Shown in pieces: positions 872-54,700 of a DNA stretch of 64,000 bases. A program made the translations under genes and the position numbers. Each line of letters opens with the position of its first letter. The stretch's first letter is position 1. This DNA comes from Marsupella aquatica (taxonomy: Eukaryota; Plantae; Marchantiophyta). Location of the stretch: contig OZ316899.1 of NCBI GenBank assembly GCA_973895155.1, positions 3,741,455-3,805,454 on the forward strand, read 5' to 3'. Below the pieces are notes generated by a model. The model did no database searches and was not told the DNA's origin. It saw only the letters and a list, made by a program, of their open reading frames with translations.

Positions 872-1103
872 ACCTGCTTGAGGGCACTTTGATGTTCCAT
901 GGAATAACTTAGGGGAGGGGACCGGATTTCACAAAATCCATATTAAGTGCTCCTAGCATTGCCTGGTACTACCGCTGCCGCGTGTACGTATTCACAGGGA
1001 GGCATCCGTGGAAATTGTTCATGTTCAGGGTTGAGGGTGCATCATGATTTGGGCCATTGCATATTCAATTTGCTTTGTCTTGTCAAAACAAATGAAGGAG
1101 TAG

Positions 1104-4100
1104 AAGAACTCATGGAATAGATTCATGATGGGGGATCTACGCTTTCGGATCACGACCCACTGGTGATAATAATTGGACTGGGAGAGTGGACGAACAACAC
1201 TCCCCCCCTTGGGGGGGTAGTTTTGTTCAAGGCCGATCCTACAATGGTAAGAAATCAGGAAAATTTGACCGCACTAGAGGGCGCATGGAACATAGGAAAG
1301 GGAGGATGCATGGAGCCGTTGCTGGCTTTCGATCGAGCTAGTAGTAGGATGCGACAGATGTACAGGATGAAATAGAGCTCCCCAAAAGAACGGGCGGAAG
1401 AGACGAGGGTGCTGCAAAATAAGCTACGGGAATGCAAGGAGGCTTTACTGGATGCCCATTCGGAGGATGATCTGAGAACGTATGTCGATGCAGAAGATCT
1501 TTTGCATGTTGCTGAACTAGAAGAAGCAAACATAAGTAGACGTCATGCTAGGATCAAATGGCTGGGTGGAGAGGATGAGACCACCTAGTTTTATTTCGCT
1601 ACAATGAAAGCTAAGAGAAGCAGGGAGGCCATGAGGACTCTATCAACGGAGGGAGGAGGTACTATTACCGAGCCGATGGCTATTCTGCAAGAAGTGGTAC
1701 GACATTGTAAAGAACTGTATGCCCCCCCTCCTCTTACAACCGGGGAGCACCAAGAGCGGCTGAGAGCAAGGAGCACCCTCCTAGCCCACACTAGACATAC
1801 AGTAACCATATCAGATTTGAATAGGATTGAAGCATTGCCCACTAGCAAGGAAATCAAGCAAACTCTCTGGCTACTGCCGTCGGATAAGGCCCCAGGCCCG
1901 GATGGTATGATTGCTGAGGTATACCGGGCCTGTTGGGAGTTTATGGGAGTGGACATAGTTGCCATGATACATGTTTTCTGGCTGACAGGTAAACTGGCTG
2001 CAGGAGTGAAAGATGGGATTATTAAATTTATTCCAAAGAAGCCTGATAAACGTTTCTTGAAGGACTGGAGACCCCTGACTATGTTGAACACGATTTACAA
2101 GCTTATTGCTAAGATCTTGGCCAATAGATTGAAGCTGGTTCTAGTTAAGCTCATCAACGTACAGCAGATAGGGTTCATCCCTGGCAGGAATATTTTGGAG
2201 AACATTTTGCTTGCCTGGCTAACATGTGATTGGGTTAAGAACAGGAAAGTGGAATCCCTGTTTCTTAAGTTGGACTTTGAAAAAGCCTTTGATAGAGTAG
2301 ATCATGAGTACATTTGGGAATCAATGCATCTGCTAGGGATTGGCAGCAACTTTATCAAGTTGGTACAGGAATTACTAAGGGACTCATCTTTGCGAATACA
2401 GGTTAACGGTGTGCTGTCAGAATCGGTGGGCGTGGAGCGGGGCGTTAGACAGGGCTGCCCGCTTTCACCCTTACTATTTGTTATCTCCACTCAACCACTC
2501 ATGGATCTCATGGATGCTGAGCTTGAGGCTGGAAGATTACTGGGGATCAAAATCACGAAGGAGCTAACAATATTTTATAGGTTATTTGCGGATGACATGG
2601 GGATGTTTATCCCTGCCACTTTGAGGAGCTTTACAATGGCCACAACTGTTTTGCATTGCTATGAAACAGCAACTTGAGCAAAACTCAACCTGTGGAAATC
2701 CATTGTCATCCCACTGTCACTGGATACTATACCGAGGTGGCTGTCAAATATAGGTTGCATGATTAGTCACAAAGGAGAGCTACAAAAGTACCTAGGTGCC
2801 CCCTTGGGGGTAGACTTGAAGACGGATCAACTGCACAGATTTGTTCTAGATAAAATCAGCATGCGCTTATCCTCTTGGGCCAATAAACTTTTGTCCTTTC
2901 AGGGCGGACACTTTTGGTGAGACACATTTTACAGGCTATTCCTATTTACCACTCCATGTTCCTAAGAGCATCTGAGGGACTTGCGAAGAAAATGATTGTG
3001 CTATGCCGAGACTTTTTATGGGGATACAACTCGGAGGGGGGCAAGAGGATCCCTCTTGTTTCATGGGCCAGAATGGCCAGACCTAGGATGGAGGGGGGAC
3101 TCGGGCTGAAGGACTTCCACAGCCACTCTGACGCTCTGCTAGCCAAATGGTTCACTGGAGCTCTAGATTGCCCAGAGACGGAATGGGCCTCTGTCTTTGC
3201 AGAAAATCTAAAACTAGTGAGCTGGATGAATTATAAGTGGATACGCCGGAACAAGTACTCCATTCAAGATAAGATGTTGTTATGCAGTCCTCGGTCCTTC
3301 AATGGACTGGCATATATTGGAGGACTGTGGAAGGCGTGGGTACAACTTCGTTCCCACCTGATTTTTGCACCCACTGTTATGATACCTGGTAGGTGGAATA
3401 TCATGGACACTATACGCTGTCTCATTGGTTTCCAATCTTGGCCCAACACAAATTTTGATGTGGTCACTGTGCTGTGTGGCCGAATGGGCATCAGAGGCAT
3501 TCAGGATTTATGGTCTGCTGAACGGAATGAGTGGCGTAATCTGAATGAGCAACTAGAACACCTTTGAGGCTTTACTTTGCTTGAGAAAACTTGCTGCAGG
3601 GAGATCTTACAGAAGGTCAGTGCTATAGATGGTTGCAGGATGAACTATGTTACTGGTTCCCGAGTCTGGAGATGGGCTGACAGACCTGATCCTATCAATA
3701 CTTTTAGGATATCCAATCTGAGGGCATACATGTTGATTTGCCCCCCGATCAGAGACTACGACAGCCTGAATCACACTTGGGGTAGCATGAAAACGGAAGG
3801 TGAATGGAATGCAAGGCGGAGTGGACTGTGGCGCTCTGACCTTTCCTCCCGTGCTAAGACATTTCTTTGGAGAATATTGGCTTCAGGTCTCTTTACGGGT
3901 GTGCAAGCCAGGCGCATTGATAAAGGAGAAGGGCACTGTAAACTGTGTAGTGGAGAAATAGAAACTATCCCCCATCATTTTGCACAGTGTGCTCATGCCA
4001 AGAGATGTTGGTCACTTGCTGCCACTTGTTTTTCAAGGACCTTTACGGATTACTCGGATAGACTACTAAATCTACTGATTCTCACAGCAGCGAAGGACCC

Positions 4101-13054: not shown

Positions 13055-13678
13055 ATGAATGACACTGGGTTGGAGGGCTTTGTCAGGTTGTCCTGGAGGT
13101 TGGTAGACATACCAGATGAGGATCTGTTGGACTTTGTGGGATGCTGGGAGGCTTCTTCCAACACGACGCTGCTGTATGGAAAGGTGTTCCAACTAACACC
13201 TGCGCTTATCGAAGCCATCTTTGCTTTACCAACAGGAAGGAAGACTAAGGTGGAGCAGAGGAAGACGTTGTCGGATGACCAGTTCAGGTCATTTCCAGGG
13301 CCTTCCACTAAGAATGGGTTTTTCAGGAATCAATGTACCAACCTACATATAGGGCAGCTGATTGATTTCCTGAGAGTCACGTTGCATTGTACCTTGCCGA
13401 GAGCAGAAATCGGCAAAGCCCAGGTATTTTTGGTGGAGAATATCGATGCAAGCCGAGACTACAACGGCTATCTCTTAATGCAGTTGAAGAAGGCATTAAA
13501 TGAAGAGAAGCAAAGCATTGGAGAGGGAGCGGTATCCAGACTAGGGTACCATCTACAATTACTTTGCCGATATGCAAGAAGCCAGTCTTTTGCACCGGTG
13601 TTGCCTATACAGGAGCGGATGCCGATCACTGCACCACTTGAGGAGGTGGAGGAGGACGAGGAGCCTTTAAGCAAATGA
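13055..13678 (+). CDS. LTR-borne accessory protein, domain b (resembles plant-transposon accessory domains of the Transposase_32/PMD type)
   Basis: 207-aa ORF; F..L.W, DF+..W, IF.LP.G, NGF...C, LH...PR.EI motifs shared by five loci. The family resemblance is by eye only. Confidence 0.7.
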   Translation: MNDTGLEGFVRLSWRLVDIPDEDLLDFVGCWEASSNTTLLYGKVFQLTPALIEAIFALPTGRKTKVEQRKTLSDDQFRSFPGPSTKNGFFRNQCTNLHIGQLIDFLRVTLHCTLPRAEIGKAQVFLVENIDASRDYNGYLLMQLKKALNEEKQSIGEGAVSRLGYHLQLLCRYARSQSFAPVLPIQERMPITAPLEEVEEDEEPLSK

Positions 13679-20182: not shown

Positions 20183-23100
20183 TTACGTGCGAGCTGTGGT
20201 CGGACCAGGGTTTGTCCACCTGTCGAGGCGAGACCTCGAGCCGCCTTGATCAGAGGTGGGCCCAGGTCTTCCCCGCTGGAGGACGAGCAGGGTAATGCGG
20301 TCCTGCAAGGCCTTGTTGTCCCGCACAGCCTCCTCCGCCTCGTTTGCAGCTTCATCAACCTCTGTCTGGAGCCGTGCTACCTCCAGGTTGAGCTGGTCGA
20401 TGGAGTCACGATGGGTCTGGTCTTGCATCAGCAATTTATCCCGTTCGGCAGAGAGACTAGCCACCTACTGAGCTGCTTGTAGGAATTGGTTGTTGAGGTC
20501 GGTCAGGCTGGTAACCCGAGCTAAGGATTCTGGGCGCAACTGAAGCACGGTGTCACGTGGACTTTAAGTTAGGGGCTCCTCGGGCAAACTACACGCTTCT
20601 GGCCGCGATCAGGATAGGTGACAAGCACTTTTCGGAGCGAACTCTCACTCCTTTATATTTTTTACTTTTCTCACAAAGTTTACAATAGGTGCCCTCGAGT
20701 AAGCTTGCCCGCAAGAGTCTGGTAGCTGGCCCTACGGCAGGCCGCTACCTCTAACTTATCGGGTAGAACTCCTCGAGTGACTAACTACTCGAAATCTGAC
20801 GGAAAAACTATCCTCCTTAGTTCACAAAACCAAAACTCGACTAGCTACTCCACTAGTCTAAAACAGCTCGCACGGAACTCGGGCCTGGACCAACGAGGCT
20901 CCAGACTCGAGAAAACTCCCCGCCTGGATCAACGAGACTCCAGACTCGAGAAACTTCCCGCCTGGATCAACAAGACTCCAGACTCGAGAGACTCCCCGCC
21001 TGGATCAACGAGACTCCAGACTCGAGAAACTTCCCGCCTGGATCAAAAACTCGCTCAGAACTCCAAAACCGACGCACAACAGCCAAGTCCCACAGAACGG
21101 AGCGAAACTCAAAGAACATAATTCAACCGACCTGAATAGACAACCGGCCACCTCAATGAGCCGAGGCTCAAGTCTAAGTAGCATCAGAAACCCAACCATC
21201 CAGCCTGAGCCAGCTGCCATCAGCGAGGCTCATCCAAACTCCAAGCCTGGTGACTCACCCAAACACCAAACCTGGTGACGACAAGTCACCCAATCACCAA
21301 ACCTCAATCCATCCAACCAAGCAGCCCCTTCAAGTCAGCATGCATGCAACCCAACTGGGAAGCCTCGTCCATCATCCCCTATAAAAGCCATTCGTGAGCC
21401 GAAATCATTTGGCACGACAACGGTGTCGTCCAGCTTCTTGAGATCCGCTTGCGCCCTGCTCAACTCCTGGGTTAGTCCGTCCCGCTGTTCAACGGTGCGG
21501 ACTAACTCCTCACGGCGGGTAGTGGCCTCCTCCTCGAGGTGTTCTACCAGCATTTGGAGGCGCCCGATCTCATTCCCCTTCGCCATGAGTTCTTCTTCCA
21601 AGCGGCTTACAATCCGTGGTTGGTGCTCTAACATGAAGAAGGCTGGTTGAAAGTACGTCGAGACTTGTTGTCCAATGTACATCGCTAGCTCCCCTGACAG
21701 AGTCTGACTAAACTTCTGGACCAGGTCGTAGGCCATGGTCCCCGGGGCTACTTGGTAGTCCTCCATCCTCTCGGGTACCGGTGGTTCCTCCTCTGTAGTC
21801 TGCACTGGGGAAGGAAAGGTTTCTTCAGGTGGTGGCTGTACTGCGGGTAGCGGAGGCTCGACGGAAGGGGGCGGCGGAATTTCAGCAAGAGGTGGTGACG
21901 GAGTACTAGTTGGGGCCTCCGGCTCGGGGTTTGGCTGAGGCACGATAGTCCGCTCACTCGGGGATGCCTCCCTTGGAGCGGGGGTGACATTAGTCGGGGT
22001 TGAGGTGGCCATATTCTTTCCTCTGGCCTCCCGCTATGCCTTGTACCAGGCGAGGATGATGGCGATATGACTTCCCAAGTAAGTCTTCCCCCCAATAGCC
22101 ATACCTCCCTAAGCCCGCTTAAGCTCCCCCGAGAACCTTCGGTAAAAGAATTGGGCCCAGTTCCGCCGTTTGTACTGTTCCACCTGCACAATCATGGAGA
22201 GGGAGATCTCGGATCGTGGCTCAATCATGTGTAGGGTAGTCCGTATGAAGTTAAGCCGCTCCATGCAGATTAAGTTGGTGCACAACCCCTGCTTGTATCC
22301 GTTGTCCGTCTTACCTTTGGGTTTGAAGTGCCAAGGTGTATACTCCTTATCCCGAATTCGGAGTTCAACCGGTATCGGCCCGGTTGGCAGGCAGAAGATC
22401 TGTGCCATCCGATGCTCCGTAAGTGATAAGGTCTGTCTTGAAACCTTGGTGGTCGATGCGTCGGTGTCAAAATTGGAGATGAACTCACAAATCTCCTTGG
22501 GCCCGGCCGTGCACGGTCTCCATAGCAAGTGAGCAAACTGCTCCAACTGATGCTCCATGAGGTAGTCCGCATGGTCAAGTTTCTTGATTGCGATTCAGAC
22601 TACCTCGGGGACGCGTATTACCTGTAATAAGTTAGACTTTGGATTATCCAGGGGAAGTCGGGCCTGGTTGGCCGGGGGGTTAGCCGGGGCAGGTGCAGGA
22701 GCGGCGTTGGTTCGCATTGTCGATTTGGGGGCCGACATCGTCCTTGCCCGCTTATGAGAACGCTGCTCAAGATGCGGACTAACTCGCTCGGAACCCGAAG
22801 AACACTTGGTGTTGTTCATGGGATGGACTTGGGACTGATTTGGGGATACGCCGGTGGTCACCGGTTGAGGGGCTGGTGGGGTCGGTGTAGCCATATCCCA
22901 GTTGAAGGCGTTGGAGATTTCCCCAAGGAACGTAAGATTACGCGTCGCTTCCTGTTGTCTACTAATGTCTTCTTGGCACTTTTTGGCTGCGATCTGCTGG
23001 TCTAGGTACCCCGGGATCTTGTCGAACTCCGCTTGAGTAAGCCATTGGCTGCCCTTCAGCCTAAAGAACATCGCGGGGACTTTGAGAATCGCCTCTGCTA

Positions 23101-35961: not shown

Positions 35962-38822
35962 TGTGACGCCGCCAGCACGACAGTTAATGAGTGATCCGGT
36001 CTAATCCGTGCTTAGCACGCGCGCTAAGGACATAGTAGTCTGTAGTAATTAGCATAACGACACTAAAGTAGGTAGTAATCACGACTAGGACATCATTAGT
36101 CAATAAGGAGCATTTACGCTTGGGCTGGTGGCAGAGTGCCATTCGTACCCCCGGGTTACAGGCGTGTGGGGATGTCCCCTTGGGTCCGTATAAAGACTCA
36201 AGGGGGTGGCTCACTGACACGCTTTGACCCGGACCTGCGGAGTGGCTGGTACATTGCAAGCATGAAAGGATTGGCCTATCAAAAGGAGGAAGGGGCCGTT
36301 CGGCCGATGAGCCCTCAGGGTATAAAAGGAGAGCTATTCTCTTGCAAAGCACCAGCACTTCACCCATCACGCCAGCTTCGACCCCAGCTTGCTCATTTGC
36401 TCCTTAGTAACCCACCACCGTTCCCTGTATTTCTGTCACAATTATGTCCAGTTTTGCCCTTTGGTTTTGGCTTCAATTTCTATCCATCGGAAATCATTTA
36501 GCAAAGTCGCTGACCAAGGTCAACCCACGCTGGTACAAAACCAAAAGGCAGTATGAACGACTCATCTGCCTGGCCGGGCGCTCTCACTACAATGGAAATT
36601 TCAACCTCCCGTTGCAGAGCAAGCTCTGTTGAGCTGACAAAATCTCCAAATACTTCTTCGACGGCCCAAAGTACGTTGGTTTCCAGGAAGCACTCATTTG
36701 GCTTTGGGACAAGGTCTTCACACTCTCGGGCACGATTGACCTATAGCGACACCACTTCAATCGTATCCCTGCCAAAGTCTAGGCTTCCATAGACCATCAG
36801 TTTGGTACCGCAGCTACAGGCAAGACATCTATCCTCACCTCACTTGGTTTCCCCTCAGACTTGTTGAATCTTATGGCGCCTCCTCCAGCTACAACTGTCG
36901 CCGACTCATTGGTGCCCGCACCAACACCACCTCGGCCTCAGCCAAGCCGATCTCCACCACCGGTTGCACCACCCCTCCGGGTGGGATCCGTGGTAAACGC
37001 GGTGAACATCAGTTCCAAAGACGAGGAAGCTCACCCTCCCTTGAACCGACAACCTCGAGGTGAAAATCAGCATGCGCCGGGCAACCCGACACCACCCACA
37101 CAAGCCCGAGTGGATAACACGGTGACAGTGGCAACCCCAGCACCAGTGCTTACGGTGGTAGTGCTGCCGCCGCCCGATAGAGAGGATGGGGAGATGCCCC
37201 CCTCTACAAGTCACCCCGGGAACCGGTCTCGGGGTAGGAAGAGAAAGGAACCCGCAGCTATATCCGGGCTGCCTTTGGCCACAGTTGCGGTGGCCAAGCT
37301 GACCATGCATCGCATGGGGGAGAATGTCCACAAGAACATTCTCCACCCCAAGCATGCATGCTACCTGAAGACCCAAGGGTTTGAGCACCTCGCCTCTCTC
37401 CCTTGGAATGGAAGCAGGTACTACCGGCAGGACATGACGGAGTTCATCTCAAACTTTGACAAGGCCCGCCAACAAACCCGTGCGCACAGGAGAGTGATGT
37501 CCCTCAATGAGGCACGGCTTAAGGTGATCTTTGGCCTACCCAAAGGAATAAATTAGGGGGAATCATGGGCTCTTGAGGGCAAAGGAGCCAAGTATCAGTC
37601 CTCTAGCTTCCCGGCCAAAGGAGCAATGGACAACGGATTCTTGATGAGGACATGCCTCATCCCGGAGGTAGCAAAGCGGCTGGAGTTCCAGAGGTACGCC
37701 CTCCACATGATGGAACCCAGGGGCAAAATATCCGCTGCCCAAGTCATCCAGGTCGAGAACTACCGGCCTAGGAAGTGGGCTTCTTTCTTTGTCAAGAAGT
37801 TCCACGAGGAGATGGAGCGATGAAGGAAGACTTTGTACCTTGGTGGGAAGGCATACCTTGCTAGCCACATTGAAATCATCATCAAGTGGTACGCCCGTTT
37901 TGACCACCAAAGCCTCCCTTGGATCAACGAGCCCGAGCTAACCCCATCATGGTGGGTATTCCCGGCCCAGGAAAGGTGACCCCAGCCCGAGGCCATAAGT
38001 CTGGAAATCATGAGGCCCACAACTACCCCGGTCCCACAACCAGCAGCTGTCGCTCCTCCGTTTGTACCAGACAATGCGGTTATCACGACCCTGGATTCTA
38101 TCAACCAGGCCAGCGCAATCGAGGCCGGGTTGTCAATGGCCGGTCCCGGCCGAGATTGCGGATATGGAGGACATTGTGTTACCCTCCATGGCTGTCCAGG
38201 AGAACCCCCCATCCCGTGCAAACCCAGCCCCCTCTACCAACATAATTTCAAGGACTGGACGTCACCACTCCAACTCCCGCGCGAGCTGAGATCTGTTCTT
38301 GCCCAAACCCGGATGGGCATAGTCTAGAGTACCCAGAACTTTTTGCATTGGGCACGTATTTGAATGGGTTGTTGGGAGACTTCTCCCAACAAATTGCGCG
38401 GGATACCGGGGAGTTCATGGCACGGAAGGTGGCCTACTTCTTCAACCAGGAATGGTTGCAGCCGTGCAAGCAGGGCATGCATAGGCTAAGGCTACACAAA
38501 GGATAGAGCGATATTGGCTTGAGTCTGCCCACCTGAAAGGCAAAGTGTCAGCCTGGGAGACCGAACTCCAATTGCTTCAACCTCAAGTAGGGTCATTGAA
38601 GATCAGGTGGCCAAAGCTAGGGCCCAAGAAGCCTTGGTACAACAAGCCGGAGCACAAACTATACCCATGACATTTCTGTAAGTAGGAATAGGCGCACTTA
38701 GCGCTAGATTATGGGAGTAAGGTTCAGTTTGCACATCCCTCCTTGCCCAAACCCTCAAAACTAATGAAGGTTATGTCCGTCTAAGCCAAAATCCGTGTAA
38801 GGACGAGGCTTACAGTGTGACA
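35962..38822 (+). mobile_element. Family-D1 solo-LTR-like unit with a coding cassette, inserted in the A2 RT
   Basis: TGTGACGCC...GTGTGACA termini; 5-bp TSD TGGTC (35957-35961 and 38823-38827); TATA-like GGGTATAAAAGG at about 36318. Confidence 0.92.
36444..38640 (+). pseudogene. D1 accessory cassette (a, b, c), fragmented
   Basis: RWYKTKRQYERL...VGFQEALIWLWDKVFTLSG (a); LPWNGSRYYRQDMTEFISNFD...IFGLPKG and NGFLMRTC...LHMMEPRGKIS...WASFF (b). Confidence 0.7.
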
Positions 38823-40910
38823 TGGTCTGGGTATTACCAGATCCGCATGGCTAAGGGAGACGAGTACAAGACTGCAATGCGCACAAGGTTTGGATCCTAT
38901 GAATTTTTGGTTATGCCATTCGGGTTGTGTAATGCAACCGCAATGTTCATGAAGATGATGAATACCATCTTTCATGACTTGTTGGACCAAGGACTGGTCG
39001 TCTTTATTGACAACATCCTAATCTACTCGAAAATGTTGGAGGAGCATGAGCAATTGCTCAGAGAAGTGTTCTCTCGCCTTTGTAAGGCTCGTCTCTTTGC
39101 TAAACCTAGCAATTGCGAGTTTGCGATGAATGAGATTCAGTTCCTTGGCCATACCTTTACCCTCAAGGGGATTACGCCTAGTCAAGACAAGCTTAAGGAG
39201 ATCAAAGAATGGGAGCGCCCGTCCAATGTAAGGCAGGTTAGAGCCTTCTTAGGATTTATGGGGTTCTATCAGAGATACATGAAAGACTATGCAAGGATTG
39301 CGAGGCCCCTAAACGCGCTAACGTTGAAAAACAAAGTGTTTGTGTGGACATAGGATTGCAAGTTAGTATTCCTAGAACTTAAGCGGCTAATGATTACGTC
39401 GTTGATTCTAAAGTTACCTGAGATGGGGAAGCCGTTCAAGATTTGGACAGACGCAAGTGATTATGATATTGGCGCCAGTCTTCACCAAGATGGGCGTCAT
39501 GTGGCCTTTGAGTCATGTAAGTTGGAAAATCATTGGATCACACCGGAAAGGGAAATGTATGCAGTGATCTATGCATTGAAGAAGTGGACGATTTACCTTA
39601 AAAACGGTCCCAAAGTGGTAATACACACAGATAGCTCGTCAGCCGGGTACTTCAGTTCTAAGCCAAGGCTGAACCCCAAGGAAATGCGCTGGTAGATGTT
39701 CTTGGCGGATTTCAATTTCAAAGTCCATCACGTTCCGGGGAAGACAAACATGGCAGCTGACGCGTTATCGCGTAAGGACCATCATTGTGTCAATGGCATC
39801 ATGATGCTTGAATCCGAGTGGCCAAAGGTTTTGGCCAAGGCGTATGGGGATGACAGGTTAGCTATGGAATGGCAAAGCAATGGGGGTAGCCAAGGCAAGG
39901 TAATGCACGTTTCATTGGGGTTGGATACGACGCATAATGTCCAGTTATGGCAATACAAGCAGAGGCGTGTGTACATCCCAGAGTCTCTAAGGTTAGAGGT
40001 TTTGCAAAAGTACCACAACTCACACTAGGGAGGGCATGGCGGACAAGCTGCTACGTATTGCAGCATGTTGCGAGATGTGTATTGGTCGGACATGAAGCAA
40101 TCGATCCTTTGCCACGTGCAAAGTTGTTACTCGTGCCAAAAGAACTGAACGGTCTATAGGGCAAAAGGAGGACTTTTGCAACCCTTACTAGTAGTTGCGG
40201 CTCCATGGGAGTCTATCTCCATGGACTTCATTGTTAGATTACCTGAGTCCCACGGCAGTAACTCCATCTTAACAATTGTGGATCAGTTTTCCAAGATGGC
40301 ATATTTCTTGCCAATTACAAAAATGGTTTTGGCCCGAGAGGTTGCCGGTCTAGTGTTTGACAATGTCTTCCAATAATGGGGATTGCCGTTGCATATCCTA
40401 TCCGACTGGGATACCAAGTTCACGGGCCATTTCTGGAAGGCGTTGTTCCAATTACTAGGGGATAGGCGTATCATCACAAGACAGATGGCCAAACGGAACG
40501 GGTGAATGGTATTTGGGAGGACTACTTGCGTCACTTTGTGACGGCCAATCAAAGGATTGGGCAAAGCACTTAACAATGGCTGAGTTTAGGTATAACTCGA
40601 CCAAGCATTCAATGACGGGGTTTGCGCCGTTTGTGTTGGCCACAGGGAGGACGCCAAGGGCACCCTCCTGGTTCATAAATTCGGAAGCTTGGCAAACGGA
40701 AAGCAAGGTTCCTTCTGCGGACAATTTATATGAGAGCGGCGCCTAGTTGTGGAAGCGGCTACCAAGGGTATGACTCTTGCCCAAAGTTGGTACAAGGAGC
40801 AAGGGGATAAACATCGACGCCAGGTAAGCTTTGAAATTGGGGAGAGCGTCTGGTTGCAGTTGAGACCTAAGCAATATCACGGGAACATAAGTAGGAAGTT
40901 GGCTCCCAGA

Positions 40911-41252
40911 GGGTATGGCACGCGTGACAGTAAACAGGAAACAGGTTTACTGGTACCAGAAATTTTTTTCCTGTTACCAGCAAAAAGTTACTGTTACCAG
41001 GAAAAATAACCATGTCAAAATATTTTCTAAAAAGTTTCATTTTCCAAAAAAATCTAAGTTACAACATTTTCTGGCTAGCTTTGGGCGCTAGCATTACCAG
41101 CGCCGGGCGCTAGCAAAAAAATAAAATTTTGAAAAAAAAACTTTTTTTCCCCAAAAAAAATTTCAAAACAAAATTTCAAAAAAATTACCACTCATTTTCC
41201 TATTACCAGTTTCTATTTTCTGTTACTGTTTGCTGTCATTTGTAAATACCCC
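40911..41252. mobile_element. Mutator-like MITE (about 340 bp) in the A2 integrase
   Basis: Imperfect TIRs starting GGGTAT...TGACAG.AAACAG; 8-bp TSD CTCCCAGA (9 bp with one mismatch); AT-rich non-coding interior. Confidence 0.85.
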
Positions 41253-42009
41253 CTCCCAGATATGTGGGGCCCTATCGCATCATACAATGGGTCCACAAGG
41301 ATAATCCAGTTTGGTGGTGTTGGAGACACCCAAGGAAATGGAGACACCGGGATCAGGTCTTGCATCCGGACGCCATGCTAGTGGAGGATGCGGAGGAGTT
41401 TGAGGTGGAGACAATTCTGGACCACCATGACAAACGCAAGTTGGGAAGGCAAATCTTAGAGTATTTGGTGAAGTGGGCTGGCTATGATCAGGCTGAGAGT
41501 ATTTGGGAACCAAAAGAAAATTTGGGTAATGCCTCAGAGATCCTTGGAAGCTATCGTAAGCAAAGCGGCCTAGCGCCATTGTGAACTGGTACAGGCAAAT
41601 GTAGCTACCTTTGTGAGTTGTATCCTAGTTTCACTCCTCTCATCCTCTTAAGGATAAAGTCATATTGCGTTGATGCTAGAGGTTGTTGAGCGGCCAATTT
41701 GTTTTTTGCGAGTGGAAGTTGATGGTGCCCGCCTTACATCTGTGGGCGGGCTGGTTTGAACCAAAGGGGAGTACCCCAAGGAGAGGATAATGTGTCCAAT
41801 GTGTTTGGAGTTAGCTTACCCGCTTGGACTGGCATCCTACTTGGATAAGTGGGATAGGTTGGAATTTCCTAAGTCTGGAATGCGCACACCAACCTGGTTT
41901 GCATCACCCTTATGGGCAAACCATTTGTTACCTCATAAAAAATTTAAGACCTATAGTGGTCTAGGTGTTCTGGAATGTTTACTGAGGTCTTGCGGACGTG
42001 ACTATTTTT

Positions 42010-47630: not shown

Positions 47631-49064
47631 TCATGTAACACATAAAGAGTCTTGATAATGTAGTTGTGTTGGTACCGTATCGGGTGTACCTGCTTGACTT
47701 CTTGCCATTGCCGTGGTCTTTGGAGTAGTGGTCTCGGGTAACTTTTGTGTTGGACTTGCTCTCTTGTTTGCTTTGTTCGATGCTCGCTCCTTCTCTGTCA
47801 TGATTTGGGTTAATCGTCTATTGACTTCTTCCGTGCTTAAATTCAGGCCAACTTTCGATTTTGTTATCGACGGCATCTGCCGTACTTGTGTATTGATTCC
47901 CACTATTGGTTCTGAATGGGTTCCCTTCTTGTAGCTTTCCACCTTCATTGCTACAACAATTTGTTCTGGTGCTATTATCTTTGTAGCTCTCTCTTCATTG
48001 GTTTCTTCTTATTGGTTCACTTTGGTTTCCAAATCCCCTTCGCTTGCCTCTTGCTCCACATCCATTTGCTGATTGCTATTCTCGTCTTTGTCATTCTCTT
48101 GATCCTTGGTTTGGATTCTGGTGTTCCCAATTCCTGCTTTTGTAGAATCTTGTTCTTGATCATTGTTGCTGATAGCTCTTGTATCTGCTCCTAGTTCTTT
48201 CTCCATTCCGATTCTTGGGCTCAGAGCTTTCTCCCTTAACTCGTCTATTTCCACGGGTTCTTCTTCTATTCTTGCTTTCTTACTCTACTTCTTTCCTCTT
48301 AATTGATATCGCTTTGGTGTTAGTTCGGTTGCCTTCTCAGGATTCTTCCCCGTAGTTAAACAGTAATGCAGTAATACTCTCGTATGTGTTCCCACCTCCA
48401 GCGTAATACTGTCCTCAAAACTCAAGTGGTCCTTAGCTCCCACTAAAGCCTTCCGTAAACTCTCGTAAAATAAAGCACTCCAGTTCTTCCTCCCTTCTTC
48501 ACAATCCTCTACTAGTTTGATGATGTACCTCGAACATTCGTTCCTTGGTTTCTTCCACATCATTGCATGGCTGATAAACTTCGCCCTCTGTTTGACAAAA
48601 CTCAAGGTACATTGAATCATCATGAATCCTGATCCCTCTGGCTTACGGAAGCTCTCATGAAAGTGCTTTGACTCATAAGTGGCTGCAACCCTTTGAGTGA
48701 TTTTTGCTCCCCCTTTGCCTAATCCGAAAGTAGCCATCACTATCTGGTAACTAGTGCTTATGGTCTGATTCAGAAATCTGCCCTTGTTCTTCTACTTGTT
48801 CCAACTCAGAATGAAATCTTCAATGTCACGATCCTTATACCGAGTGATCTCCCAATTCAGATTGATGAACTCTGTCAAAAATTGTGCCTTCACAAACTCC
48901 TAATGTATTTTCGACCTGATAAACCCCACTGTTGTAATGGACATTTTCTCTAGTCTTGATTCTTCCTCCGATTTCATTTCCTCCTTCTCTCCCTTGCTAC
49001 TACGATTGTTGATAGGATCGCGACAAGTTTTCCTCCTTCCTTCCTTGGCTCAATTAGAAGACAT
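47631..49064 (-). pseudogene. Accessory-domain-b gene (about 478 codons) outside any LTR, with an acidic low-complexity tail
   Basis: ATG at 49064; ORFs 48285-48740, 48009-48254 and 47631-47948 share one frame, separated by single stops; FLTEFINLNW...DIEDFILSW...FGLGKG...NWSALFYESLRKAL. Confidence 0.75.
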
Positions 49065-49235: not shown

Positions 49236-50813
49236 TAGCACCCAGCGCTACAGTATTGAAACAGTCTAGAAAACCCAAAACCTCATTTAAAACATCTATA
49301 TGCAAAAGTATGCCAAAAAGCAACTGTATACTAGCAACAGGCGCTAGTATACAGACCTCAATAATAGACCTAAAATAACATAGATCAACTAGAGACCATC
49401 AGATGCCAATTTATGAAAAATTGTGAAGGGGGGCAGTTGCAGTCTAATATCACCAAATTATAATACATTCCAAGTTAAGATTCTCCTCTTCCCAGGGGAA
49501 AGTAGAGTCAAAAAACAATCTAGACAACACATGTCTCACTTTATAAACACCCATCAAAATTACATGTGTTCACAATAGCGCCAAGCGCTAATTTGTAAAA
49601 TAGCCAATATCTCTATCCAACAGCTATTTTTAAAGTCTGGCTAGCCATCAGATTCTAAATTAGTCGTATCTAGTTTTGATTCTTCTTCACTACTTTGTGA
49701 TCTATCAGAAGACTCAGCTTTGTCGTCTACATACTTGCTTGGCACAATGTCATCGACATAGCAGTTCTTCAAAAACTTCCTATCCGAGCCCCTTTTGAGC
49801 CTCAGGCCTTTACTTTCCCAAGTCAGCATTCTCACAAAATCTGCCTTTCGAGCCGCCTTTTCTGCATAAGAAGGCAAGAGATACGGCTTCTTCGGGGTTT
49901 CTATTGCATTCCTAGCGACTTTCCTCCATAGTTGAAAGCGCTTCCAAAGATTCCACTTAGACCTAGAAAGTTGAATCCGATATCTTTAGTTGGATCCGGG
50001 AAAATGGTGGAATTTTGGAGACACTAACGTCACCCTTAAAAAGAAAAGAAAAAAGATAGGGAAGCCGCAGATCATTACTCATAAGACTCTTCACTATCCT
50101 CAGATTTAGAAGACCCAAGGTTCACCACATTCTTGGAGGCACCATCGTCTTTGGACTGTTGAGTACTGTCGCCTCCATCATTGTCCTTGTCAGAATCAAA
50201 ATTAAGAACAACACGGAGTTTGTCATGCTTCTTACTCCCCACCTGCCAATGCGGAGGCGTGGACGTGGAGGCTTCTTTGTTCTCAAGAAGTCCAAAGAAA
50301 ACTTTTGTGGCAATGTCAAGAAACTCTTTACAATTTTCAACCCCGACTACAAACCTCCCACAATGATCTCCAACAACAAATGTACTTCCGGCCCCGACTG
50401 TCTAGTCCATGACAATATCCCCAGGGAGGGTAATTAATTCTAAAACTGACTACATGAAACCCACAAGCAGCCTTGAATTCCCAGCAAACGCAAGCTCCGG
50501 AAGAGGATCATTTTTTGGCACAAGAAAACCAATGAGATTGGTTATCGAAGGACCCTCTGTATGTGAAAGAGGTCAAAATTTGGGATCCTTTGGGACCCTA
50601 CCTTTGGACAAAACACGCCCAAAAACATTGAGAGTGAGCGTAAAAATCTGCATATCAAATTACATTTTGTTCATAATAAACATTAGATACTTCTTCAAGA
50701 ATACGGAAACCATTCATCAAGAGGATATGCCACACTAGTGCCTGGCGCTAGCATCACCTTCAATGTCGAAAGAAGGACACAAAACAGAAACTCCAGAATA
50801 GCGCCCGACGCTA
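49236..50813. repeat. Five dispersed copies of the palindrome TAGCGCCNGGCGCTA
   Basis: 49236-49250, 49332-49346, 49576-49590, 50736-50750 and 50799-50813; also 41076-41090 and 41098-41112 in the MITE. Confidence 0.85.
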
Positions 50814-51010
50814 TTATACGTACCTGAATACCCGAGCAGGGCCTGTACATTGGTGTGCCCATCACAACATTGTGTGTCGAGATACACTGAAATTTATGTG
50901 AATCTTGACAAGCTGCAATGACTTTTAGAGACTTGGTCATAGTCGCCCCGGTGCAAAATCGCTAGCAATCCATCATCTGCCAGGAAGGATCCATTGTTCT
51001 CCGGGTACAT
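49641..51010 (-). pseudogene. Spliced beta-class N4C/N6A DNA methyltransferase-like gene, N-terminus lost
   Basis: FLADDGLLAILH (motif VI-like, from 50986); LELITLPGDIVMD*TVGAGSTFVVGDHCGRFVVGVENCKEFLDIA (motifs X-I-II, 50309-50443); phase-0 GT-AG intron 50648-50823 joins the frames. Confidence 0.72.
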
Positions 51011-51499
51011 GGTCTGGTCCACATCCCTGCCAAGCACCCAACCCGGGTCCTTCCTGATCGGTTTCCCTTTCTCCGGCTCTTTCTCGCTCATTTCCTCTTC
51101 TTCGAACCTAACCCTTCTTTCCTTGTCTTGAGTATCCCGCCTCTCTCATTCCCCTGATTGAGACGAAGTGTCATCCTCGTCGGTTTTCTTCCTTTTTGAC
51201 TCAACCGAGGCATCCCAACTAGCCCCAACCTCAACCATTATCGCATTGATCAGCACTGAGTCACTCCATCCGGATCTCTCTCGCATCAGATCCGCCAAGC
51301 GCTTGTAAAACTTATCCGTTTCCGTCACGGGGCCATCCAACTCCACATTGTAAACATTTACTTCCAGGTGCGAAGAGGACGCTGTCGTGATAATTCAATT
51401 ATTCATGATGAAATCATTACCACTAAGTATATTAGTAAGTATATAGGTTAGATTTATATTTTGTTACGGGGTAACTAAATAATTTGACTATTACGTATG

Positions 51500-51870
51500 T
51501 GCATGCAAGGTAAGCAACTATGCAAACCACAAGATGCATGCACAAATTGTTTGGATGCATTTACAAATTGTTTTATTTGCATGCAATAGTCGTTTTATGT
51601 GCATGCAAGGTGAGCAAATGTACAAGCCACAAGGTGCATGCACAAATTGTTTTAGGTGCATGTAAATTGTTTTATTTGCATGCATTAGTTGTTTTATGTG
51701 CATGCAAGGTGAGAAAATGTGCAAGCCACAAGGTGCATGCACAAATTGTTTTAGATGCATGCAAATTATTTTATTTGCATGCATTAGTTGTTTTATGCGC
51801 ATGCAAGGTGAGCAAATGTACAAGCCACAAGGTGCATGCATGCACAAATTGTTTTAGGTGCATGCATTAG
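51500..51870. repeat. 99-bp tandem array rich in TGCATGCA in the J 5' LTR (one unit fewer at about 59196-59470)
   Basis: 33-aa periodicity in the spurious ORFs; LTR lengths of 1367 and 1268 bp differ by exactly 99. Confidence 0.9.
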
Positions 51871-52753
51871 TTGTTTTACTTGCATGCATTATTTGTTTTG
51901 GTTGCAATAGTACTAGCATACATTCCTATGTTGAATGTGTGCCACTTGGCTTTCATCCAAGCATTTGGGCGTAATCCATGTCCTCTTGGATTCAATATAA
52001 ATAAAGTGGTGAGGGACACTCTCTCATCATTCCCACATTTTGATAATTTCCGCGTCGAAGCGATCCTCTTTTCTTCATCTTTCTCTTCTATTCTTTGCCT
52101 TATGTATATAATAGTGGGACATCCTTTGGCCCGAATAGCAAAGGAATAAGTGGTAGACTTATAGATGGGACCTTAGGGAACAAGGTCTCTTTGGAAACTT
52201 AAGGGTGGGGCATCCTTTGGCCCTGATAGCAAAGGAACAAGAGAGTCATTATGAATCCAAGAGGGAGAGATATCCCTAATCTTCCCCTTCGTAACCCATT
52301 TTTGGTTAGAGTCCATCTTTTAGACAAGCCATCCACGAGGCAGCATTTAACTTATCACTTTGGAGCTCAATTTGCAACTGTTGTTATGAGTTCTGATGAG
52401 CCAATAGTATACCCAGTAGTGTCTTACCGAGAGGAGTGGGAGTGCATTATCTTTGTCCTTTATTGAAGTCATGGATCTAAATAGGAGTCCAAATGACATT
52501 CCTATTTCATTTTCTCTTTGAGATATTAGGATTGTATGTTGTAGAAAAATTAGTTTCCGAGATGTGTTGATCCGCAAGTATGGCGAAGTAAGATTTAATA
52601 GTATATTAGTTTCACCTGAACCTTTCTTAATACCCACCACCTTTCTTACAAGAGTTATCATTTTGGTTTTAGTGTAGAACTTATGGGCATGCAAGGTTAA
52701 CTTCATAAGAGCCAACATGCTCTTACGAAAAAACACGGTCACCCGGACATAAG

Positions 52754-52960: not shown

Positions 52961-54700
52961 TTACATGGAATGAAGGAGAAGGAGATGGAGTAGAACAAGA
53001 AGAAGAAGTTGCTTAGGAGGATCACAAAGTACTTGCACTCGGTTCTTACTAAGCAAGGAGAATTGGATGGGCAAAATGTGATAAGGTATCTCTAGGGATA
53101 CTGGACAGAGGCTATAATTCACAAGATTGATGCTGAGATAGCAATCAAGGAGTTTGTGTCTTTGGCGGAACCTAAACTCAAGGAAATTGTTGTTTCCTTG
53201 ACAAAGGGAGCTAATGGAGAAAAGGCATGGAATATTTTTGAGCTGAGAATGAAAGAAGAATTTCAGCTGGAAGATCCAGATAGGGTCACCCAGGCATCTT
53301 TCCTTGATTGGGTGACTGACAGAAGTAAGAAGTTGGGACCTCAAGAGTTGATGAGGGAGTTTGTCAAGAAGTTCAATCAACTTCCAAAGATAGGATCTGA
53401 AGTTATCAAGATCCAGAAGGCTACTCTACTCATTCGGGCTGCTGATGAGAAGCTTCAGGATGAGTTAGAGTTTGCTCTTGAGCTAATGAACCCGAGTCGT
53501 GGGGCTAATCAACCAACTTGGGAGAAGGTTGAGATTGCTGTGCTAAGAGTCAGTCAAAAGCATAGAAGGAAGAAACTCAGTCATGAAGGTGTTCTGGACA
53601 CAGTAGCACCTGTGACTTCTATGAGGAGAGTGGAGAAGATGGAATCAACAACCGGTAGAGGTGAGAAGAGTGTGGACAAGATGGATGAGTTGTCTGAACT
53701 CATGAAAAATCTTATCATTCTTGCCACTCAAGCTTTGGGACAAATTGGAGGCAACACATCGAGACCACCATCAAGAGGTAGTGGAGGAGCAGGAAGTTCT
53801 ATCGGAGGACCAAGAAGCTGGAATTGCATTTGGTGTGATAGCAAAGAGCACTCTAGAAGAGAGTGTGCTGAGCTGTCTGCTGATCTAAAGGAGAGAATGG
53901 TTAAGTTTGTTGAGCATGATGGCATAAGAAAACTTGTCTATCATGATTCGGGTGAACTTATTCCAGTCAATGCCAACAAAGGTGGGATGAAGGTACTAGT
54001 GGAGAAGAGAATGGCTGAACATCATAACTCAGCCATTGTTGCAGCTTATGAGGATAAGGGTGAGCATGAAGCAGATGTCTACACTGGGTTTGAGGATCCT
54101 TTGTCAGCAGGATCCTCAGAGACAGAGAAGAAAATGCTAGCAGAGTTTGTAAGGAGGAAATCAAGTTGGAATGATCATGTTTTGATCTCTACTTTTACTG
54201 CAGAGGTAGGGTCTCTATGGGATTCTATGGTGGAGGAGAAGAGAAATTCTGTGGAGCCTTTGGAAGAACGTGCTAAAGAAAAACAGAAAGTGGATTCTGG
54301 ACCTTCTACTCCTAGGCCATCATCTGATGTGCCAATGAAAAGGAGTGTTTGATTTGAGGACAGAGTAAGCACACCAAAAGAGTCTACTTCAACCCCTTCA
54401 AAGGAGTTTGAAGTAGTAAAAAAGGAGAAGATAAAAAAAAGACCTGGTTGGATACTTGGAAGGGATGTGGAGCAACACATAGAGTATGACCAGGTTGCTC
54501 ACAAGTTTTGGAAAGCCATAGTGAGTGGAGTCACCAATGAGGAGTTTTTTGCTTGCATAAACTCCAAAGTGCAAGATGCTTTACTTGCAAAAGTGAAGCA
54601 AAAATGATTTTATAAAGAAGGACCTCATGTATTGGGAGCAGAGTTTTATTCTGAAGTTGGAGAGGATGGAGAAGGTTCATTTTCAAGAGCTAATACAGAG
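52961..54700 (+). pseudogene. gag: J gag with zinc knuckle
   Basis: 398-aa ORF 53156-54352 with CIWCDSKEHSRREC; homologous to K gag. Confidence 0.85.

Follow-up and report, generated by a model that had tools for sequence, protein, structure and literature searches.

Prokaryote-type amino-methyltransferases are rare in eukaryotes, and the few that have been studied, N4CMT and DN4MT1, turned out to be epigenetic writers. Bdelloid N4CMT, which carries the PF01555 domain and conserved introns (PMC8885841), and Marchantia DN4MT1 (10.1101/2021.02.12.428880) are host genes present in low copy number; their catalytic motif is intact (TSPPY in DN4MT1) and their activity has been demonstrated. Proteins with a ParB-like part and an N4-cytosine/N6-adenine (N4C/N6A) methyltransferase part are borne by algal transposons, as in Sola1-1_Ec32 of the brown alga Ectocarpus (PMC12477816), and similar proteins in green algae are cited there from Iyer, Abhiman and Aravind (2011). 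In the Plavaka elements of the red alga Bostrychia, an N6-adenine methylase (PAG2) and a ParB-like domain (PAG3) are on separate genes, and inverted-repeat arrays lie beside PAG3 (10.1101/2025.02.11.637652). ParB-fused Dam-type enzymes were described in chlorophytes, along with few N6A methyltransferases in land plants (Iyer et al., 2016; PMC4738411). In the literature searched, we found no paper describing transposon-borne ParB-methyltransferase proteins for land plants. Here we analyse a stretch at 49641-51000 on the minus strand of a window of Marsupella aquatica DNA (the whole 64,000-nucleotide stretch analysed, contig OZ316899.1), in which a hidden, spliced gene for a transposon-carried writer of N4-methylcytosine or N6-methyladenine (4mC or 6mA) had been predicted. 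With a probability of roughly 80%, we read this stretch as the remaining 3' two-thirds of a decayed copy of an accessory gene that has at least three exons and belongs, in many copies, to a transposable-element family. The middle of the protein would derive from a permuted beta-class N6A/N4C DNA methyltransferase, namely from its S-adenosylmethionine (AdoMet)-binding subdomain with motifs X, I, II and III. A C-terminal exon, also conserved, would follow, and the product of intact members would be a DNA-binding accessory factor for the palindromes of the family.

Like the genes of the algal ParB-methyltransferase proteins, this one is eukaryotic, bears introns, encodes a prokaryote-type amino-methyltransferase domain and lies in multi-copy mobile DNA. 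Both are also accompanied by element-specific inverted repeats or palindromes, proposed as binding targets. In contrast to the algal proteins, no ParB part was seen in the window copy or upstream in its relative L005, no transposase adjoins the gene, and the relatives yielded no catalytic motif. With the PF01555 enzymes of phages and bacteria (CcrM, Stenotrophomonas phage CUB19 and Loktanella phage pCB2051-A), the gene shares collinear motifs X-I-II-III at 35-41% identity over ~55-63 residues. Unlike those enzymes, it has introns, an acidic tail and a third exon, its catalytic half is unrecognisable, and the HPxxKP of motif X is degenerate. N4CMT and DN4MT1 are likewise eukaryotic genes of prokaryotic descent, whereas here we find a dead member of a multi-copy family, truncated and broken by stops, with hundreds of contigs per sequencing run. 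This methyltransferase family may extend the algal kind to a new host group; the locus itself is only a relic, a broken and probably transposon-borne gene, which adds a corrected exon-intron model, the retention of palindromes and a hint of a non-canonical catalytic motif.

A methyltransferase-like core broken by stop codons

The minus-strand frame reads, in order, PLSHTEGPSITNLIGFLVPKNDPLPELAFAGNSRLLVGFM, TAG, SVLELITLPGDIVMD, TAG and TVGAGSTFVVGDHCGRFVVGVENCKEFLDIATKVF..., and runs on into an acidic Ser-rich tail that ends at 50078. Around the first TAG the translation is ...LLVGFM, stop, SVLELITLPGDIVMD, stop, TVGAGSTFVVGDHCGRFVVGVENCKEFLDIA.... Translation places the two TAGs that had been noted at 50452-50450 and 50404-50402, and reveals a third in-frame stop upstream of both, a TGA at 50575-50573, that the original prediction had overlooked. 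A 72-residue read-through peptide with X placed at both TAG stops was used as the Pfam query. It matched PF01555 (N6_N4_Mtase) with an E value of 4.1e-6 and 27.3 bits, the curated cut-off being 26.7, over positions 171-221 of the 221-position profile. The matching stretch, at 50303-50455 on the minus strand (MxSVLELITLPGDIVMDxTVGAGSTFVVGDHCGRFVVGVENCKEFLDIA), contains motifs X, I, II and III. The match takes up the C-terminal end of the profile, and at least 120 coding residues precede it in the window copy. An AdoMet-binding motif I loop of the FxGxG type (D-x-F-x-G-S-G-T) followed by motif II (GR-x-x-I-G-x-E) was sought in this stretch. Both are present: DIVMD, stop, TVGAGST...GRFVVGVE of the window copy pairs with the Loktanella phage sequence DVVFDLFMGAGST...GRQFIGVE.

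The Pfam match exceeds the cut-off by 0.6 bits and was obtained only with X at the two stops. Searched alone, the stop-free pieces matched nothing in Pfam or PDB, and a 108-aa piece had no match in a word-indexed protein search. On these grounds the resemblance could be put down to chance, and bacterial contamination or a very recent transfer could be considered with it, but we regard this group of explanations as highly improbable. Independent libraries and methods concur, and relatives without stops show the same motifs. The read-through peptide matched only DNA methyltransferase families in PHROGs (best E value 9.8e-6) and only DNA methyltransferases in NCBIfam (CcrM, 1.8e-4). A tblastn search against phages returned 981 records, and the best listed were all annotated as adenine-specific or DNA methyltransferases. 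Among them were CUB19 (5e-5) and the Loktanella phage enzyme, which was 41% identical over 54 residues. In phage enzymes of 251-275 residues the matched part was C-terminal, which fits the permuted beta class. A local hidden Markov model (HMM) built from 123 phage-type enzymes matched the conceptual protein at residues 121-174 with 26.4 bits. When the alignment of the family was compared with that of the phage enzymes, hhalign gave a probability of 95.2% and an E value of 2.6e-8, and 91 of 100 matches among Atlas features fell in N6_N4_Mtase. Contamination and recent transfer are both excluded by the introns, the multi-copy status and the identity of only 35-41% to phage enzymes. Since Pfam, PHROGs, NCBIfam, tblastn, hhalign, the HMM and Atlas agree, the homology is, as judged by sequence comparison, real but confined to the AdoMet-binding half (motifs X, I, II and III). 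The predicted descent of part of the frame from prokaryote-type beta-class (N6_N4) enzymes is therefore upheld, with the reservation that the PF01555 match belongs to the read-through peptide and not to its separate pieces.

Exon-intron structure and decay of the copy

An exhaustive search of representative proteins yielded three exon-sized relatives, P0002 to P0004, with 43-46% identity. A profile search with these three added one further fragment, P0005, and a metagenome scan for relatives yielded nothing. An ankyrin protein that appeared in the exhaustive search was rejected as spurious, having been drawn in by the acidic tail. Three contigs of the relatives, L001, L005 and L006, all come from one public run and are decayed copies, each broken by stops and frameshifts of its own. 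Over three blocks, exons A to C, these copies run collinear with the window at 31-48% protein identity. Between the blocks, the intron sequence is unalignable among the copies and the GT donors are at identical codon positions.

The surviving 5'-most exon is truncated (exon A', 50824-51000, minus strand; NNGSFLADDGLLAILHRGDYDQVSK / VIAACQ...CSGIQ) and is homologous to L006 197-358 and L005 1573-1737. Its peptides, FLADDGLLAILHRGDYDQVSK and VIAACQDSHKFQCISTHNVV / VIAACQDSHKFQCISTHNVVMGTPMYRPCSGIQ, lie in two frames one base apart at the A run 50923-50927, where an extra A shifts the frame. The frameshift had been placed near 50926, in agreement with this position. Intron 1 (50648-50823, minus strand; 176 nt, GTACGT...TATGCAG, phase 0) was also predicted correctly. 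Its donor is at the same codon boundary in three copies (CAG^GTACGT in the window, CAT^GTAATT in L006 and CAA^GTAAGC in L005, where ^ marks the splice junction), and the intron ends near a pyrimidine-rich AG. Exon B (50079-50647, minus strand) encodes the methyltransferase-like core and the acidic Ser-rich tail, and its translation is broken by the TGA and the two TAGs. The donors of intron 2 line up as well (GA^GTAATG, GA^GTAAGG and AA^GTAATG in the window, L006 and L005). For this intron the original prediction had the right donor but, with a length of 44 nt (50078-50035), the wrong acceptor, as the AG at 50035 is non-homologous. The acceptor of L006 and L005 (GAGCAG^GTCAnAATGGAACC; ...CAG^GTCA(T/A)AATGGAACC) aligns with TTTCTAG^GTCTAAGTGGAATC of the window, and intron 2 is therefore 49963-50078 on the minus strand (116 nt, GTAATG...TTTCTAG, phase 2).

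With the acceptor at 49963, exon C (49641-49962, minus strand; SKWNLWKRF...PKKPYLLPSYAEKAARK...DDKAESS...LESDG) follows in frame to a TAG at 49643-49641, and the additional stop that had been predicted in the last exon is gone. Exon C is homologous to L005 2507-2801 and L006 1108-1218 and is kept up to a common acidic C-terminus. It matched no Pfam family, an Atlas search with scores of at most 0.83 gave no usable lead, and neither a chromodomain nor another reader domain was found in it by Pfam or Atlas. The conceptual three-exon protein has 355 residues. The two GT-AG introns are thus kept in position across three diverged copies, and what had been predicted as a spliced gene with spliceosomal-type introns in repeated, transposon-like DNA is supported in this respect.

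Logan contigs from four public runs (two organisms) were aligned to 49400-51400. Each run contributed hundreds of contigs at 90-99% identity, spanning 49534-51000 with the introns included, which shows that the sequence is a multi-copy repeat. One odd contig skips 50673-50819; it lacks GT-AG ends and is no evidence of expression. Depth dips over 50673-50806, in intron 1, drops at positions below ~49534, and is lower inside both proposed introns. By this depth pattern in the four runs, conservation among copies of the family is higher in exons than in introns.

These counts bear on a different origin of the locus, as the decayed remains of a host methyltransferase gene, for example one for a DN4MT1-like 4mC enzyme, that came to lie between retrotransposons. 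Marchantia DN4MT1 sets a precedent, being a land-plant N4-cytosine methyltransferase gene with TSPPY (10.1101/2021.02.12.428880), and the immediate neighbours of the fragment are indeed pieces of long terminal repeat (LTR) retrotransposons of the gypsy type and not a transposase. A host pseudogene is nevertheless very improbable given the hundreds of closely similar, intron-bearing contigs in each run. In addition, one other run holds several deeply diverged, independently decayed copies, and palindromes are dispersed with the copies.

Comparison with the sister copies revealed how this copy differs from its family. Most sister copies have G at 50452 and C at 50403 (plus strand), which gives CAG (Gln) and TGG (Trp) at the TAGs of the window; at the same two sites P0003 has Q and L, and P0004 has W. 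The A run 50923-50927 is one base shorter in many sister copies, so that exon A is one continuous frame. The Gln codon of GFM-Q-SV has become TAG independently in the window (50452-50450) and in L005 (~2044-2046), a recurrent C-to-T change at one site. At 50999-51002 there are loose ends, from which sister copies run on upstream with different coding sequence, and word depth rises 3-5 fold at 51008, within a gag fragment. Together, the loose ends and the jump in depth place a breakpoint at 51000/51001, close to the junction that had been predicted at about 51010. No other place in the 64-kb window holds the lost 5' portion. The best-supported differences between the window and its sister copies comprise 6 synonymous and 15 non-synonymous changes, many of them TGN where other copies have CGN. 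This pattern looks like neutral CpG decay in methylated repeats.

The private or minority states of both TAGs and the extra A, the 6:15 ratio of changes and the breakpoint show that this copy is dead: a pseudogene, truncated at its 5' end, that has one frameshift and three nonsense codons and encodes nothing functional. The prediction of a hidden gene does not hold. At the gag breakpoint the copy lost its 5' part, and with it the start and whatever catalytic motif there was; the frameshift and nonsense codons were gained afterwards, largely by C-to-T decay.

Catalytic motif, palindromes and the possible role of intact members

The window copy is cut before motif IV, and the predicted loss of the catalytic region by truncation is thus confirmed. 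L005 and L006 reach ~65-100 codons further upstream, with ...GKDL(T/I)..G.R....VI.GGKE..F..N..FIYLP..L.P.V.D..V... followed by ...FF(K/Q)AM(N/D)PFLS..GMLAILY. In this upstream part, neither L005 nor L006 has an in-frame (D/N/S)PP(Y/F/W) or (D/N/S)(P/L)P(Y/F/W/H). One out-of-frame NPPW is present in L005 at nt 1299, ~25 codons further up; it matches chance expectation, and both contigs are decayed. In a low-confidence profile alignment, the DPPY of the template is opposite G-Y-R-K in L006 and, at the corresponding position of L005, G-stop-R-E. Among the copies, the AdoMet loop is either retained (VGAGST, MGSGST) or degenerate (VGSTST, IRSGII). Taken together, we lean towards a non-canonical, possibly inactive enzyme, with the reservation that L005 and L006 are themselves pseudogenes.

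The prediction of a transposon-carried 4mC/6mA writer is borne out as to its repeat-borne nature and not as to its activity. It is still conceivable, although we consider it rather unlikely, that intact copies encode an active 4mC or 6mA writer, adapted to eukaryotes, with which the transposon marks itself. The window copy, P0002 and L006 retain (V/M)G(A/S)GST in the AdoMet loop, and the conservation of the exons over a long divergence implies a selected protein. Such a role has been proposed in the literature for the ParB-methyltransferase proteins of algal transposons (PMC12477816). Apart from the missing motif IV and its poor counterparts in the profile alignment, a writer is disfavoured by the degenerate HPxxKP of motif X and by the motif I loop, which is degenerate in P0003 and P0004.

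The non-coding parts of the gene contain a 15-bp CpG-rich palindrome, TAGCGCCNGGCGCTA (TAGCGCC-N-GGCGCTA), that recurs in the window and in the diverged copies. Allowing up to two mismatches, there are six palindromes in the window, against 0.18 expected: two in intron 1 (50799-50813 and 50736-50750), three in the 3' flank (49236-49590; at 49576-49590, 49332-49346 and 49236-49250) and one elsewhere, at 41098. With up to three mismatches, the relatives have six, against 0.11 expected. In L005, one is in intron 1 (1764), three are downstream of the stop (2886, 2913 and 3125), in the same slot as the 3' flank of the window, and one is upstream (928). L006 has one in intron 1 (402-416) and none in its 3' flank or elsewhere. 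The variant TAGCGCCCGACGCTA is identical in the window (50799) and L005 (928), and the palindromes of L005 range over 928-3139. Palindromes thus occupy equivalent non-coding positions in copies whose proteins are only 31-36% identical. Their retention despite this divergence argues, at the level of sequence, that the palindrome is a functional cis element of the family.

We reasoned that the intact protein could methylate the palindromes (6mA or 4mC) or, more likely since the relatives lack a canonical in-frame catalytic motif in the part they preserve, would only bind them through its methyltransferase fold. Intact members would then be sequence-specific DNA-binding accessory factors that act on their own CpG-rich palindromes in intron 1 and the 3' flank. 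A more specific version, which we put forward only tentatively, is that intact members are accessory proteins of a plant DNA transposon, in which a methyltransferase-derived fold, active or not, recognises TAGCGCC-N-GGCGCTA and self-recognition marks or shields the element, the window copy being a fossil of it. If true, a methyltransferase domain and conserved palindromes in one transposon family would constitute a possible self-marking or anti-silencing system. The VANC anti-silencing proteins of Arabidopsis VANDAL Mutator-like elements reportedly recognise short motifs that have amassed in the non-coding parts of their own family (work of Hosaka and colleagues in 2017). Self-recognition here would have counterparts in VANC-type anti-silencing and in the self-binding that has been proposed for algal ParB-methyltransferase proteins. 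The likeness to VANC is a proposed working principle with no sequence relation, and self-binding in the present family is only inferred.

Several results weigh against the reading of the locus as a relic of a transposon-borne, methyltransferase-derived accessory gene. Within the window, the fragment could not be linked to a transposase, a terminal inverted repeat or a target-site duplication. No spliced joint was found at either intron among the contigs aligned from the four runs. The N-terminal halves, compared alone in hhalign, gave a probability of 0.2%. This half is thus not significantly similar to the catalytic halves of the enzymes, a complete methyltransferase fold is only a possibility, and the motif VI label once given to the upstream peptide FLADDGLLAIL is reduced to a plausible pattern. 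Because of the truncation, the window shows no ParB-like part. Upstream in L005, Pfam matched no ParB-like domain in nine stop-free pieces within 1.5 kb, nor in one such piece of L006. Finally, binding of the encoded protein to the palindromes is pure inference.

Surrounding sequence

The window has a G+C content of 48% and is dense in retrotransposon open reading frames (ORFs). Abutting the truncation is the C-terminal fragment of a gypsy-type gag (51001-51394, minus strand, by tblastn), which had been labelled K and is unrelated to the methyltransferase-like gene. It matches the intact gypsy gag on the plus strand at 54116-54244 (49% identity) and 54443-54481 by tblastn, and the gypsy element carrying that gag is at 53156-54481. 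Just beyond the fragment, 51496-51910 consists of tandem repeats of ~99 nt with 22-nt sub-repeats rich in GCATGC. This array yields long ORFs at 51518-51847 (minus strand) and 51520-51870 (plus strand), which are probably repeat artefacts.

On the other side of the locus, a 151-aa ORF at 48285-48740 (minus strand) matches no Pfam family and is 24-28% identical to 13208-13597, 22052-22396 and 37530-37814. These related stretches are in or near retrotransposon coding regions, which suggests a domain spread over several element families. A gypsy/chromovirus-type pol extends over several ORFs at 38817-41600 (plus strand). Its first ORF matches the Pfam family RVT_1, and the later ORFs appear by eye to be RNase H-, integrase- and chromodomain-like.

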